This document shows, piece by piece, positions 2,782 through 12,233 of a stretch of DNA of 64,000 bases. The stretch is from Hyaloraphidium curvatum SAG 235-1. Lineage: Eukaryota > Fungi > Monoblepharomycota. The stretch's first letter is position 1, and each line of letters opens with the position of its first letter. A program made the translations under genes and the position numbers. The stretch lies in NCBI GenBank assembly GCA_025558095.1, contig JAIVFI010000038.1, forward strand, positions 434,001-498,000. The letters are read 5' to 3'. The notes under the pieces were generated by a model that had not been told where the DNA came from, did no database searches, and saw only the letters and a program-made list of their open reading frames with translations.

Positions 2782-3071
2782 TTCGCGGCGCTATCCGACG
2801 TGATACTGACGTGAGACTTGGGGAATGTGGTGGGGGTTGGGGCCGCTCCGCGCCCGCCCCCCCCCGGATTCCTCGCCGGTCTGTCATGTGCACCGACATC
2901 TATCAAAAGACTGTGGCTCGCGAAGCGTTGTCAGGTACTTCGGATTCTTTTCTTGCCAGATTCCCGCGTCCGCCCGGCATCTTGCCGCCATCCCCTCCCA
3001 TCGTTGACCGGCCCCACGAGCTCGGTCCACCGACCCGTCACTGGTCATACGAGCACATCCAATCGACTGCA

Positions 3072-3873
3072 TCAGAAGACGAGCAGCAGTGACACGACGA
3101 TGGTAAGGAGAGCGAAAAAGACCCCCCAAAAGTTCATCCAAAAGCCAGCATTGCGGCCGGCCAGATCTTCCTCGCACAGAATGGAAGCCGGCGCTCCGTA
3201 TAGGGCCGTATACCCAGCTAGCATCATCACCAAGATTCCACCTGCTAGGGTTCCAATGATGAGGAAGAGAACCACGAATCGCCCCCGTTTCCACCAGGAA
3301 CTGAACAGGGTCCTGCTCCACGCCGGCCGGAACATGTAGTAAATGACCGAAATGAGAATGGAAGTTGCCGAAGAGTATATGGCTCCGATCATGCAGCGCT
3401 GCATGAACATGACGTACGATGCCACGCTCGTTGAAGCCGTAACGGGATCCATCCCACATGACACCATTGCCTGTTCCAGGAATTCGTAGTGTTCATGGTT
3501 CAGTGCTCCTTGGATGGTAATCGGTATGGTCAAGATAAGTGTGTTCTTCGTTGGCCCCGGCCCCAATGTCAGAAAGCGAACGGAACGGTGAGGCAAACGG
3601 GAGCTGGCCCACCACGACGGCGAAGGACCCCACGGCAATGTCAACGTCCTTGGACCTCACCTTCCCCGTGTCTTTTATGTAGGTCCGTAGCGCGCTCGCT
3701 TCCCAGCGCTTTTGCCAGTGCTCCTTCGGGGATCTCCAGAACGACGGTGGATCCCCGGACGCGCCCGATACTGTCCTGGCTGTCGTGGAATCGGAATCGC
3801 TGTCTTTCCCGTCCGCAGCGACCGCGATGACGTTTGCCGCCGACTGCCGTTCGCCTTCTCGTGTGTTCGCCAT
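3072..3873 (-). CDS. uncharacterised multi-pass (about 4 TM) membrane protein, 1 intron
   Basis: ORFs 3493-3873 and 3072-3644 join via a GT..AG intron at 3546-3612 (FAVV|NTLILTIP); several hydrophobic helices. Confidence 0.7.
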
Positions 3874-4034
3874 TGTGGCGTTGTGTCAGTCGATTTACGT
3901 AGTCGCTGACGAATGTTCAGCTAGGGATCTAGTTAAAACGACTAAGCCGGACGACGTCAAACACCCATCCATCCATCGTTCAGAAATTCTAATGATTGAC
4001 GAATGCTCGCTCTAAAAATATGGTGCAGGTAAGA

Positions 4035-5040
4035 TCACAGCCTCGTCCCCTTCCCCTCGCTCTTTCTCGGCCAAACCTTCGGGTACCACCCCGGATCCCC
4101 CGCCAGCAGCTCCCCGTCCTTCACCCCGATCAAATTCGTCCACTGTATCGCTGACCACTCCCTCCTCACCATCCTCGCCTCCCCGCTCACGTACCTCACC
4201 GAGCTCGCCCTCCTCACCCTCCCCGACACGTTCCCCGCCGACCCGTGCAGCGTCCTCGCGTCGTGCACCAGCACGTCCCCCGGCTCGGCGTCGAGGTACA
4301 CCGCGCCCAGCTCCTTCTCGGCGGCGGCGTCGATCCGCGGGAGGGGCGAGAAGGAGGGGTCGCGGTCGCTGCCCGGGAACGTGCCGTGGGAGGTGACAAA
4401 GTCCGACGGGCGGTACAGCCTGCCGTCGAGGTGCGAGCCCGGGATGTAGCACATGGCGCCGTTGTCCATGCGGACGGGGTCGACGGGGCACCATGCGACG
4501 GCGCAGGGGCCCGAGAGGTCGAAGTACGGGAGGTCCTGGTGCCACGGCGTGCGCAGGCCCGAGCCGGGTTCCTTCTTGAAGACCTGATCGTGGAAAAAGT
4601 GCAGCGTGCCGACGCCGAGGACCTGGGCGACGATCTCGGGGAGGGGGCCCTCGACGCAAAAGTGGCACAGCTGCGGGTCCCAAAGGGAGGCGCCGGTCTC
4701 GATGATGTTGCGTCCAGTGCGTGCGCCGGCGCCGGGCTCGAGGGCGATCTCCGCGCCCCTCTTCTTCCTCTCCAAAACGTCGGCCATCGCGGCCGAGTCG
4801 GCACGATGCCCGCGGGCCGACATGCCCCTCGCGACGGCGTCGGGGTCGGCCGCCTTGGCGGCGCCTTCAACGTCGACGACGCGGTCGATGTTGCGGCGCA
4901 GGTAGTCGACCCAGTCGGGCGGCAGGATGCCACGGAGGGCGACAAAGCCGCGCGTGCGGAACTCGGCGGCCTCAGCCGGCGTGACGGCACGCAGCGGGCG
5001 CGGCGAGGAGGGCGCGCCGGGGCCGGGCTCCCACTTCATC
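4035..5040 (-). CDS. phytanoyl-CoA dioxygenase (PhyH) family Fe(II)/2OG dioxygenase, intronless
   Basis: FRTRGFVALRGIL, TPWHQD (HxD), AEPGDVLVHDARTLHGS, RRA; the ORF could start as far upstream as 5102. Confidence 0.9.
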
Positions 5041-7252: not shown

Positions 7253-7914
7253 TCAGAACGGCGGCACTCCTCCTCCCGGCATCATGCTCGTCGACAACCG
7301 CCTGTTGTGGACATCGTCCGCGCCCGATCCCCGCCTGCTCCCTGCCGCGAGCCTCTGCGCCTCGGTCAGCGACGCCTCGGTGCGCTTGAGCGCCTCTTCT
7401 CCGCGCAGCGCGTCCTCCTTTGCGCGGCGGATGGCGAGGTCAACGGAGATCTCTGCGTCCTGGATGCAGGCGAATCAGGGAACGTCAGCCTCAGTTGATG
7501 CCTCTCGATCGCGCCGCGCCCACCAGCTTCTCGGTCGGTGCGACTCCGGGCTCCTTCTTCCCTCCAGACCCTTTGCTGACCTTGATTGACGCCCTCCGCT
7601 CCCTTGAGCCTTCCTGAGGTGACAGGAAGTGTCGGTCCCCGTCTTCGCCCCGCCACGTCACGGGGAGCAGCAGAACCCACTGCCGCCTTGAACGGTGCCG
7701 TCCCTGCTGTACCTGCTCCACCGCTCAGCTCAGCATCCGGCATCCTTTCCTCGCCTGCAGAGAGCGCAGGTGCCCCGCGGTCCATCGGGTCCCGCCGCTC
7801 GGCACCCGGGGTGGGTTCCGAAAGGAGCTTCGGGGCGGAAGGGGGGAAGAACTGGTTGCTCGGAGGCGTGAGCCCGCGATCGGCGAAGGGGGTCGCGAAG
7901 GGGTGCTCGGACAT
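7253..7914 (-). pseudogene. small disordered/coiled-coil protein, frameshifted tandem paralogue of 8072-8750
   Basis: KAAVG..[shift]..VLLL..QEGSRERRASIKVSKGSG..|intron|DAEISVDLAIRRAKEDALRGEEALKRTEASL. Confidence 0.6.
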
Positions 7915-8071
7915 TGATTGCTGTTTGTAACGAGCAGGATGTAGGGAACTGGATACTGGTCAAGTTGTTGTTCGACCGTGGGATGACGGTGTGCGGGCTT
8001 CTGCCTCCTAACACCCTGCGCCAAATCACCCCTCGAATCCAAAAGTCTGGAAGAAATCGAGCCAGGTACAA

Positions 8072-8750
8072 TCACGGCTTCGTTCCCTGTCCAACTTGGT
8101 GGCCGGTCCCCAGCAACAACGGGCTAAGCACCATGCTCTCCCCGCCCCTCTCGGCCGACACAACGATCTCCCTCCTTTCCTTTTCCGCCTTCCTCCTCAC
8201 GTTCTCCAAGGTCTCCTCCGTGCGATGCAGGTGCTCGTCCCCAAGCTGAGCCTCCAGCTCGGCACGGCGGATCGCCCTGTCGAGGTCCTCCTGCGCCTGG
8301 CCGGTCCCCGATCAGTCCGCCTCGTTGTCGTGCGTGCTCCGGAAGACATACCGATGTCGTAACGGCAGGCGGCAGCTCGTTTTTCTTTCCCACACCGCTC
8401 TTGTCGGAGACCGCGATGGACGCCCGCCGCTCCGCGCTGCCCTCCTGCACCGGTGCGTCAGCGATGCCGGTCCTTTCCGCCAACAACACCGGACCAACCG
8501 CGGCCTTGGGAGGCAACGTCTCCACGGGCTCGTAGTTGGGCAGTTTAGTCTTCCTGGTTGCGGCGGCAATCTCAACGGGCTCCGTGGAGGCCGCGGGTTG
8601 CGGTGCAGGGAACGTCGACGGACTTGCGACAGCCGCGGGGGCAGGCTGCGCCGGCGCGGGTTCCCCCGAGAGAGAGAGCGCGCCCGGTGGAAAGAGGTCC
8701 GAGGGCGACCATTCAGCGGGAGGGGTGGCGTAGGGCGTAGTGGACGACAT
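8072..8750 (-). CDS. small disordered/coiled-coil protein, 1 intron
   Basis: MSSTTPYATPP..KAAVGPVLL..QEGSAERRASIAVS..TTS|GTATGT..CAG|AQEDLDRAIRRAELEAQLGDEHLHRTEETL. Confidence 0.65.
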
Positions 8751-8959: not shown

Positions 8960-9439
8960 TCAAGCGGCCGGGGCTCCGGCTTTGTCCTTGGCCGGAGTAG
9001 TGGGCGGCGTTGCGGGCTTGGTTTCTTCGAGGAGGAGCCCGTGCTCATCGAGCCAGCGGGCGATGGATTTGCCCGGCAAGGTGATGTTGGCGCCCTTGGC
9101 GTCGGTGATTTCCTTGACGACCTGGAGGGGAGCAATTCGTCAGCGGGCCGGACGGGAACAGTGCGAACAGTCGGTACCTACCTTGTTGAACTCCTCCTGC
9201 CCCAAGAGAAGGTAAAGGCCGAAGAGCTGGACGGCCTTGTCAATCTTGGGCAGCTCAATCCTCTTTTCGAGGCCCTTGAGCTTCTCGGCCGCCTCCGTGC
9301 CGATGCCCGGCACTATGCTGGCGGGTGACGCGTAGCTCAGGTTGGCCTCCCTGAACTGGTCGCTCTTGGTCAAGGCTACGGTGCCGACCTTGGCCTTGCC
9401 GAGCTGCTCGGCGAGCGCGTCGACGTTGGCTGCGGCCAT
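8960..9439 (-). CDS. barrier-to-autointegration factor (BAF)-like DNA-binding protein, 139 aa, 1 intron (9122-9181)
   Basis: Spliced product ..KSDQFREANLSYASPASIVPGIGTEAAEKLKG..IDKAVQLFGLYLLLGQEEFNK|VVKEITDAKGANITLPGKSIARWLDEH aligns colinearly with BAF motifs (K..DF, GIG helix-hairpin-helix, KKL, DKA, LGQFL, GAN, EW). Intron is GTAGGT..GCTGAC..CAG. Confidence 0.75.
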
Positions 9440-9622
9440 CGTAGGGCGATTCGGGTGGAGAGTTGTCTGAGCGCTGAGTTTGCGATGCTGGAGCGGTCCG
9501 GCAGCGTCTCCCTTAAGTGCAAGGGCCGTGTGGCCGAGCGTCGGGGCTCGGCCCGTCGGGGCTTGGGGGGCACAGCGCTGAGACGGGTCATCGCGCGCTA
9601 CGGCGCGGCCCAGGGAACCGTG
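9440..9622. promoter_or_regulatory. probable bidirectional promoter between the BAF-like gene and the kinase
   Basis: 183 bp between two divergent ATGs; inferred from position only. Confidence 0.5.
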
Positions 9623-10705
9623 ATGGAGCCCGTTCCGGTCCTCAATCTGTCGTCCTTCAGCGCGGGATGGACCACCGGGGCGCTGCTCGGCCGGGGCGCG
9701 CACGCCGCTGTGTTCGCCGCGGTGCCGTCCAGGGCCTCCGCGGGCCAGGAGCTGCTCGTCGCGAAAGTCGCCCTGGGGCAGGAAGGATTCAGGGCGATGA
9801 ACGAGGAGAGAACAAAGTACACGATGCTCAGATCCTCTTTTTCTTCGACGCCGGGGGTCGAGCCGGTGCCCAAGGCGCGCTTCATTCCGGACTTCTACAA
9901 CCTGCACTACATTCCGCCCACCGACTCGGACAAGCTAAAGCGGCCGTTTATCATTCTTGAACGATTGGCAACGAGCCTCGATTCCGAAGCGGAAATGACG
10001 CAGCCGGCGACGAATCGCAAGTGGGGAACGCTCAAGCGCTGGGCGCTCGGGATGTTCGACTGCCTTGCCGCCTTCCACCTGCGCGGCTACGCGCACCGCG
10101 ACGTCAAGGTGGCTAATTTTGGGTTGAGGAAGTCGCCCTCGGGGGGCGACGAGGTGGTGCTTTTCGATCTGGGCATCGTATCCCGCCCTTCGCTCGCCAA
10201 GCCTGACAAGGGCAAGGACTACACGGGCACCCTCCCGTTCCTGAGCATCCGCGCCCACGGCAAGCTCAACCCCGTGTTCAGGGACGATCTCGAATCGCTG
10301 TGCTACTCGATTTTGTGGCTGCTCGGGGAATGCAGGCTCCCCTGGCCGGACGACGCGGATGCGGATACCAAATCCGTGCTGCAGGCCAAGAAGAAGATGG
10401 AGGGCCTCCTTGGAGATGTGGAGGAGCTGCGGGAATGGGCGGGAATCAAGGGACCGTTGCTCGAACCAATGACCGCCATGCTACAGCGGGTTCTGAAGAT
10501 GCCCTGGAACAGGAAGCCGGATGCGGAAGAGTACGCCACGCTCCGGAAGCTACTGGCTGACACGGAGGCCGTGGACGAGCAGCCCGGTGGGACTCCGGTC
10601 CGGCCGAAGCTCAAGAGGGCCCGCACGTCGGAGGTCGACCGGCTGGCGGAGGAGGCGCGGAGGTTCATGAAGGGCGAGCTTACTCCGAAGCGGCTTCGCC
10701 GATAG
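9623..10705 (+). CDS. CK1-superfamily Ser/Thr kinase, VRK-like, intronless
   Basis: LGRGAHAAVF, VAK, HRDVKVAN, LFDLG, GTLPFLSIRAH, RDDLESLCY, WLLGECRLPW; basic C-terminal tail PKLKRAR..PKRLRR. Confidence 0.9.
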   Translation: MEPVPVLNLSSFSAGWTTGALLGRGAHAAVFAAVPSRASAGQELLVAKVALGQEGFRAMNEERTKYTMLRSSFSSTPGVEPVPKARFIPDFYNLHYIPPTDSDKLKRPFIILERLATSLDSEAEMTQPATNRKWGTLKRWALGMFDCLAAFHLRGYAHRDVKVANFGLRKSPSGGDEVVLFDLGIVSRPSLAKPDKGKDYTGTLPFLSIRAHGKLNPVFRDDLESLCYSILWLLGECRLPWPDDADADTKSVLQAKKKMEGLLGDVEELREWAGIKGPLLEPMTAMLQRVLKMPWNRKPDAEEYATLRKLLADTEAVDEQPGGTPVRPKLKRARTSEVDRLAEEARRFMKGELTPKRLRR

Positions 10706-10847: not shown

Positions 10848-12233
10848 ATGGCCTTCGGTTTCGACACGACCGCCGAGGAGGCCGCCGCCGCCTTCGCCTC
10901 GGGCATTGCCGGGAAGAACGTCCTCATCACCGGCGCGTCTCCCGGCTCGCTCGGCGCCGAGTGCGCGCGGGTGCTCGCCAAGCACGGCGCGGCGCTGATC
11001 GTCCTCGCCGGCCGCAACCCGGAAAAGTGATATCGCGCGTCCGCACGCCCGGGGCCGCGCATCTGACGCGCGATTCCAAGCCTGAAGGCCACGCAGGCCG
11101 CCATCCTTGCCGAGACACCCAAAGCCAACATCCGACTGCTGCAGCTCGACCTCGTCGACCTCGATTCCGTGCGCAAGGCCGCGGATGAGGTGCTCGGTAC
11201 GCGGAATGGAGGGACGCGGAGAGCCGGGGTTGATTTGTCCCTCTCGCTCTTCTCTCTCTCTCCCCTCTCGGAATCTTTGTCGCTCTCTCATTGTGCCAGC
11301 ATATAAGGAACCTATCCACGTGCTCTACAACAACGCGGCAACGATGGCCACGCCGTACAGGCCCGCGCCGAAGGGGCTGGAGTCGCAGTTCTGGGGCAAC
11401 CACGTCGGACACTTCCTCTTCACCAAGCGGGTCCTGCCCAAGGTGCTCGAGTCGGCGTCCGGGGACCACAAGCCGCGAGTGATCAACGTGTCGAGCCGGG
11501 CGAACCTGCGGAGCGGGGTGCGGTTCGACGACATGGGGTTCAAGGGCGGGGAGACGTGCGTGGATTGCGGGCGAGCTGCTGTCTCTGCCTAACAGCGCTC
11601 CAACCTGTTTGGCTCCCCCACAGGTATGATCCATGGTGAGAACACCCATTTGCCGCCGCCTTTCGACAGCTGACCTCTTCCTTGTCCCTCAGGATCGCTT
11701 ACGGCCAGGTACACCCGCAATTTCTGGACATACCGCGGGTTGCGACCTGACCCCGCTTCGCGCAGAGCAAAACCGCCAACGTTCTCTTCTCCCGCGAGCT
11801 CGCAAAGCGCTACGGCGACAAGCTGATCACCTTCTCGCTGCACCCCGGAGGCAAGAGCGCACGTCCCTCGAATCGATCCCGCTAATCCCATCCCCGAACG
11901 CGCAGGGATCAGGACCAACCTCTCGCGCGACCTGACCGAAGAAGCGCGGCAGACACTCGCCAAGACGCTCCCGGCCGGGTTCAAGTACAAGACCATCGAG
12001 AGCGGCACCTCCACGTGGGCCTCCGCCTCCATCCCCGCCGGGGGAACCCACGCTCACATGCCTCCTGCAGCCACATCTGCGCCGGGTTCGACCCCTCGAT
12101 CGTCGGCAGCAGCGGATCGTACATGCAGGACTGCGCCGTGGACGACGCGGGGTGCGCGGACTGGGCGAGGGACATGGACGCGGCCAAGAAGCTGTGGGAC
12201 CTGAGCGAGGAGCTGATTGAGGAGAAGTGGTGA
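10848..12233 (+). CDS. short-chain dehydrogenase/reductase (retinol dehydrogenase/WWOX-like), multi-exon
   Basis: GKNVLITGASPGSLG, LYNNAA, NHVGHFLFT, RVINVSS, YGQ|SKTAN, SLHPG, AKKLWDLSEEL. Confidence 0.9.

Follow-up and report, generated by a model that had tools for sequence, protein, structure and literature searches.

A small spliced gene and a kinase gene lie head-to-head in the window

The stretch of DNA analyzed here, referred to as the window, comprises 64,000 nucleotides of Hyaloraphidium curvatum SAG 235-1 (assembly GCA_025558095.1, contig JAIVFI010000038.1, positions 434,001 to 498,000 of the forward strand; positions below are those of the window) and contains two divergently transcribed genes, one for a small protein that may be a distant relative of the animal DNA-bridging protein BAF and the other for a protein kinase that resembles the VRK kinases. 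The small gene is located on the minus strand and its two exons together encode 139 amino acids, as read from the sequence and its translation. Exon 1 (9182–9439, with the ATG at 9439) contributes 86 amino acids and encodes a conserved N-terminal extension (residues 1–22), a candidate phospho-acceptor position (T24/S26) and a helix-hairpin-helix motif VPGIG (9313–9299), which is followed by the helix IDKAVQLFGLYLLLG. It is separated by a phase 0 intron of 60 nt (9122–9181; 5' GTAGGT, branch-like GCTGAC, 3' CAG) from exon 2 (8960–9121), which adds 53 amino acids and a TGA stop codon and contains the motif GAN, a conserved W-L-x-x-H, a non-conserved TP-rich insert and a conserved C-terminal GAPAA. 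The intron contains an in-frame TGA, so that an unspliced reading stops early. The kinase gene (9623–10705, plus strand) consists of a single exon for 360 amino acids, and its product is identical to the database protein P0001. Between the two start codons lies a spacer of 183 bp (9440–9622), presumably a shared bidirectional promoter together with the 5' untranslated regions. An earlier reading of the letters alone, here called the original prediction, had described a 139-amino-acid gene split by an intron and located 183 bp from its divergent neighbor; its gene model proved to be exact, the distance agrees when counted from ATG to ATG, and the motifs listed for the small protein (KSDQF, VPGIG, EKL, IDKA, LFGLYLLL, GAN, and RW) are all found in the order claimed.

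In the gene calls of the public assembly GCA_025558095.1 the kinase is present and the small gene (equivalent to positions 9338–9817 of locus L001) is absent, the stretch from the kinase to the next called gene (7253–8750) being empty. An open reading frame (ORF) of 255 codons on the minus strand (9140–9907) includes exon 1 in frame and continues over the intergenic region and the 5' end of the kinase gene, which is encoded on the opposite strand. This ORF is an artefact of high G+C content and could mislead ORF-based gene callers.

The pair is conserved in a second locus

An exhaustive phmmer search with exon 1 against 1.84 billion protein representatives gave three matches, only one of which, P0004 (85 amino acids, 43% identity), is a true homologue. 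The other two, P0002 and P0003, were rejected as tandem-repeat proteins that reach E-values of 1e-5 to 1e-6 only by summing 5–6 weak repeat matches. P0004 comes from locus L002, a contig of 5 kb in an assembly of run SRR23967301, where the small gene has its exon 1 at 2854–3099 (82 amino acids), a phase 0 intron of 67 nt (GTGAGC...CTGAT...CAG) at the same place as the intron in the window to within one codon, and its exon 2 at 3167–3289 (40 amino acids). The small protein is thus 122–139 amino acids long in the two orthologues. Identity between the window and L002 amounts to 44% for exon 1 and 35% for exon 2 (alignments A1 and A2), and both genes have in common the start codon, the position and phase of the intron, W-L-x-x-H, and the terminal GAPAA. 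When the whole window was searched by tblastn with exon 1 of L002, the sole match was found at 9421–9188 (E 6.7e-11). Because start, stop, both exons, and the place of the intron are all retained in an orthologue from another genome, the small gene is, judged by sequence comparison, real and more than a chance ORF, and that two exons are kept at the protein level around an unconserved intron argues well for a coding gene that is spliced.

GAPAA forms the last five residues in both orthologues (8963–8977 in the window, 3272–3286 in L002) despite a 13-residue indel in the preceding tail. TP sites had been claimed for the C-terminal tails of both proteins of the window, and they are present at exon 2 residues 38 and 42 of the small protein and at residues 324 and 354 of the kinase. 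However, those of the small protein sit in the 13-residue segment that is missing from the L002 orthologue, which is without any S/T-P site, and by this comparison they are not a conserved feature.

In L002 the small gene also lies head-to-head with an orthologous kinase gene, at a distance of 231 bp, and the L002 kinase shows 47% and 38% identity to the window kinase over its two exons (alignment A3). The conserved adjacency that the original prediction had proposed to look for is therefore seen in the one further genome in which the small gene was detected. A tblastx comparison of the whole L002 contig with the window identified the kinase and the small gene as the only shared genes. Because the flanking genes differ and are without detectable similarity, the pair appears to have stayed together in these two loci while its surroundings changed. 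These comparisons indicate that the two divergently transcribed genes form a real unit that has been conserved. Alignment of the intergenic regions of the window and L002 revealed no significant conserved motif, and the sole shared 9-mer is at chance level (about 0.16 expected, as an estimate).

The kinase is most similar to VRK1 and VRK2 among characterized kinases

The beta3 lysine Lys48 (9764–9766), the catalytic loop HRDVKVAN (10094–10117; HRDVKxxN), DLG in place of DFG with Asp182 (10166–10168), and the CK1-group signature GTLPFLSIRAH (10226–10258), all on the plus strand, are kept in both kinase orthologues and align with their equivalents in VRK1. As the catalytic residues are intact, the kinase is predicted to be catalytically competent and should be active. 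When the sequences of the PDB were searched with the window kinase, VRK1 was matched with an E-value of 1.9e-11, VRK2 with about 1e-9, the tau-tubulin kinase TTBK1 with about 2e-8, and CK1 with about 1e-6. With a profile of the two orthologues, VRK1 and VRK2 scored 60–62 bits (E about 6e-16) across both lobes (profile 13–259 against VRK1 33–278), whereas Hrr25/CK1 scored 42–46.5 bits over the C-lobe only and TTBK 33–37 bits, and in a search with the first exon of the L002 kinase alone VRK1 and VRK2 again ranked first, within the top nine matches (E 3e-5), a ranking that compares solved structures and not a full kinome. Matches in Pfam were weak and partial, with 26.3 bits for Pkinase_fungal over 80 residues (cut-off 24.1) and 18 bits for Pkinase.

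These comparisons place the kinase in the CK1 group, with VRK as the most similar of the characterized kinases, an assignment based on similarity scores. With VRK1 and VRK2, its best-scoring solved relatives across both lobes, it shares the CK1-group GT..F.SI.AH in place of APE, the intact catalytic residues, and a basic C-terminal tail. It differs from VRK1 in having DLG instead of DYG and HRD instead of HGD in the alignment, and from both VRKs in being a fungal protein of 360 amino acids with a tail of no demonstrated similarity to that of VRK1 and with a short stretch that reaches the Pkinase_fungal cut-off. CK1/Hrr25 and the tau-tubulin kinases, members of the same group, can be aligned with the window kinase over their C-lobes at E-values of 1e-8 to 1e-11, but they remain about 15 bits below VRK in the profile search and their N-lobes do not align. 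The 'Vrk1' described in Cryptococcus is a 'virulence-related kinase' and is unrelated.

The basic tail of the kinase (10604–10702, plus strand), with the clusters PKLKRAR (10604–10624) and PKRLRR (10685–10702), resembles a nuclear localization signal, and the tail of the L002 kinase likewise carries K/R clusters (KRKKR and PRKRARK), suggesting that both kinases may be directed to the nucleus. An apparent shared motif in the two tails was discarded, as it did not score above shuffled sequences (40 vs 31 ± 6, maximum 53). The original prediction had recognized a kinase of the CK1 superfamily with VRK-like features and a tail looking like a nuclear localization signal, and both points hold at the level of sequence: VRK1 and VRK2 are clearly the best solved relatives of both orthologues, the basic clusters are seen, and GT..F.SI.AH is present as GTLPFLSIRAH. 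The second motif given, WL.G..LPW, is present as well, but the actual WLLGECRLPW is one residue longer than had been written.

The L002 kinase gene contains a 50-nt phase 1 intron (1939–1988, GTGAGT...CAG) in the region of the activation segment and the window kinase gene is intronless, implying that one of the two lineages gained or lost this intron.

The small protein shows a weak but reproducible resemblance to BAF

BAF folds into a compact, all-helical structure of some 89 residues that includes a pseudo helix-hairpin-helix, and its homodimer bridges double-stranded DNA and binds LEM domains. Pfam, PDB, and structure tests with the small protein were all run exon by exon. In a Pfam scan over 24,736 models, exon 1 of the window matched one family only, SAM_BAF (PF02961), with 13.1 bits and an E-value of 0.14, and in the HMMER alignment residues 41–83 (9191–9319, minus strand) correspond to positions 21–56 of the 88 in the profile, with an insertion of about 7 residues relative to it. 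Without the N-terminal extension the score for SAM_BAF was 13.9 bits (E 0.078). The corresponding part of L002 exon 1 also matched SAM_BAF only (12.1 bits, E 0.29, profile 17–54), and untrimmed L002 exon 1 gave no match in Pfam. As the E-values of 0.078 and 0.29 span 24,736 models, they correspond to per-model p-values of about 3e-6 for the window and 1e-5 for L002. None of the many generic helix-hairpin-helix families in Pfam was matched by the exon 1 core.

The likeness to BAF (BANF1) extends to several features. Both are small proteins, with predicted helices in the window protein, and in both a DKA...G..L.L helix comes after a GIG hairpin, with matching order and profile positions. Immediately ahead of the first core helix there is a Ser/Thr-Lys, kept as T24-K25 in the window and as S-K in L002 (alignment A1), and a kinase resembling the BAF-regulating family is encoded next door. 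Outside the stretch aligned by the profile, the likeness of individual residues was judged against what we take to be the human BAF sequence. The window protein differs in being about 22 residues longer at the N-terminus, in having some 7 residues inserted behind the hairpin helix, and in finishing with a C-terminal tail whose last residues are GAPAA; it also scores 12–14 bits only and comes from a fungus-like genome, while BAF is described as restricted to metazoans.

Taken alone, SAM_BAF scores of this size would be ignored. They gain weight from the neighboring gene, as the question of BAF is raised independently by the VRK-like kinase next door. Since animal BAF is a substrate of VRK1, the two resemblances are independent of each other and functionally coherent. 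On the basis of these sequence comparisons, homology of the small protein to BAF is plausible and reproducible, if unproven, and we regard it as fairly probable.

Genomic surroundings and distribution

Genes around the pair contain introns and encode ordinary eukaryotic domains (IBR, PhyH, short-chain dehydrogenase, 2OG oxygenase, beta-lactamase). Together with the intron signals and a G+C content of 66%, this setting agrees with a fungus-like genome but is no proof of a taxon. Downstream of the small gene, a gene on the minus strand (7253–8750) encodes a Pro/Ala/Ser-rich protein of 325 amino acids with no Pfam family on record and no counterpart in L002. A short-chain dehydrogenase gene adjoins the pair in both loci, beside the kinase in the window (10848–12233) and beside the small gene in L002 (about 3630–4776). 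No orthology between these two dehydrogenases was detected by tblastx, and their presence is either a coincidence or the result of an old inversion with divergence. An apparent intron of the window dehydrogenase gene contains a CT-rich low-complexity tract (ctctct..., 11230–11275).

Word-indexed protein searches with exon 1, the exon 1 alignment, and the kinase detected nothing beyond the window's own kinase and P0004, and the protein searches yielded no relatives of the kinase beyond its partner in L002. A scan of metagenomes with the kinase alignment gave three distant loci only (L003–L005), none with the small gene as neighbor; L003 carries a gene for a bacterial-type sugar-binding regulator and its context is clearly bacterial. 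The collections searched were protein sets and metagenomes that hold little fungal DNA. As annotation failed to call the small gene in its own genome and L002 contains it only as a truncated exon 1 ORF, the low number of homologues is weak evidence of rarity.

Discussion

Comparison of the two loci indicates that both genes of the pair are real and that they are conserved head-to-head, one of them encoding a kinase with intact catalytic residues that is most like VRK. The best reading of the whole, to which we would give slightly better than an even chance, is that a BAF-like DNA binder and a VRK-like kinase are co-expressed from a conserved divergent two-gene unit. The small protein would then most likely be related to BAF, though very distantly, and would carry in addition a helix at the N-terminus, a tail at the C-terminus, and a short insertion behind the hairpin. 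In the mechanism proposed, the shared promoter region of 183 bp would co-express both proteins, and the small protein, probably a dimer, would use its hairpin to bind double-stranded DNA or chromatin, presumably in the nucleus. The kinase would phosphorylate the small protein, and the most plausible site is the conserved Ser/Thr that precedes the first helix of the core (T24 of the window protein). DNA would then be bound less strongly, in parallel to the effect of VRK1 on animal BAF. A functional phospho-switch of this kind is suggested by analogy with the animal proteins.

Several results weigh against this proposal. The SAM_BAF scores of 12–14 bits are far under the gathering score of 25 bits and cover about 40% of the domain, and exon 2 of neither the window nor L002 gave a BAF match in Pfam. 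No BAF chain was detected for the small protein when the PDB was searched by phmmer and with two-sequence profiles at E-values up to 10. AlphaFold2 models of exon 1 were unusable, with a predicted local distance difference test score (pLDDT) of 48.6 alone and of 49.2 with the orthologue. In a Foldseek search with the first of these poor models (pLDDT < 50) nothing was found at an E-value below 6, and helices are predicted where the alignment would put those of BAF, an agreement that carries no statistical weight. In the case of the kinase, the cut-off of Pkinase_fungal is passed on a stretch of 80 residues, and the conserved linkage is based on n = 2 loci. The claim of the original prediction that the small protein is BAF-like is thus upheld as far as SAM_BAF is the sole Pfam family in both orthologues, but it did not gain support from the height of the scores or from the PDB searches.

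As an alternative, the small protein could be a lineage-specific helix-hairpin-helix protein without common descent with BAF, whose weak SAM_BAF matches would reflect a GIG hairpin followed by an amphipathic helix. BAF scores that stay under the threshold and are limited to the hairpin region, PDB searches without a BAF match, exon 1 models that give no structural confirmation, and the published view that restricts BAF to Metazoa (PMC5630835; bioRxiv 10.1101/2023.05.31.543154) would all fit such a protein. We nevertheless consider it rather unlikely, as SAM_BAF and no generic helix-hairpin-helix family was matched, in both orthologues, and as a neighbor that is specifically VRK-like would become a coincidence needing explanation. 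Because the pair is conserved, even a helix-hairpin-helix protein unrelated to BAF may be a partner, substrate, or regulator of the adjoining kinase.

It is improbable that the adjacency is without functional meaning, two unrelated genes on a short bidirectional promoter having remained neighbors in two related genomes for no other reason than the shortness of the interval. Although only two loci are known and no conserved intergenic motif was found, as might be the case for such neighbors, the proteins are only 35–47% identical and the flanks share nothing detectable, so that the neighborhood has been reshuffled around an intact pair, and the two functional resemblances fit each other. The further idea of the original prediction, a foreign-DNA defense or selfish toxin-antidote module in which the DNA-bridging protein would be a toxic effector and the kinase its neutralizer, is very improbable, as it draws only on the analogy with BAF restricting poxvirus DNA and on the tight linkage, while the window contains a single copy of each gene and no paralogous pair, no transposon, repeat, or compositional island surrounds the pair (G+C 0.59–0.66 vs 0.62–0.71 in the neighboring 12 kb), no relatives of the pair were found in the viral contig collection or in prokaryotic genomes, and PADLOC gave generic kinase-domain matches and none for the small protein.

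With regard to a BAF-like protein encoded beside a VRK-like kinase, BAF has been described as a conserved metazoan protein that yeasts lack (PMC3198171), tethering mediated by BAF via LEM domains has been described as probably limited to Metazoa (PMC5630835), and Dictyostelium is without BAF (bioRxiv 10.1101/2023.05.31.543154). BAF is an established substrate of VRK1 (PMC3952857). No report of a fungal BAF was found in the literature, nor one on the assembly or on run SRR23967301, and the publications on BAF and VRK examined, which do not treat gene order, describe no such arrangement of a gene pair.

Irrespective of its relation to BAF, the small gene is a conserved spliced gene that is missing from the public annotation of its assembly and nearly absent from protein databases. 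If the homology is true, the window encodes a divergent BAF outside animals that is longer at both ends and has residues inserted, and its gene is physically linked to that of its likely kinase. A fungal BAF-like protein beside a VRK-like kinase would place the origin of the module in the common ancestor of animals and fungi, or would point to a transfer. A divergent BAF-VRK module may be older than the separation of animals and fungi and may have been retained by some fungi as a linked, co-regulated head-to-head pair. To this possibility we would give somewhat less than an even chance, and annotation pipelines would in this case have missed the BAF-like gene because it is small and spliced. 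If the pairing of BAF and VRK is true, the linkage of the two genes would constitute independent genomic evidence for the relation between kinase and substrate, and the pair would offer a genetically tractable system for DNA bridging and its regulation by phosphorylation.

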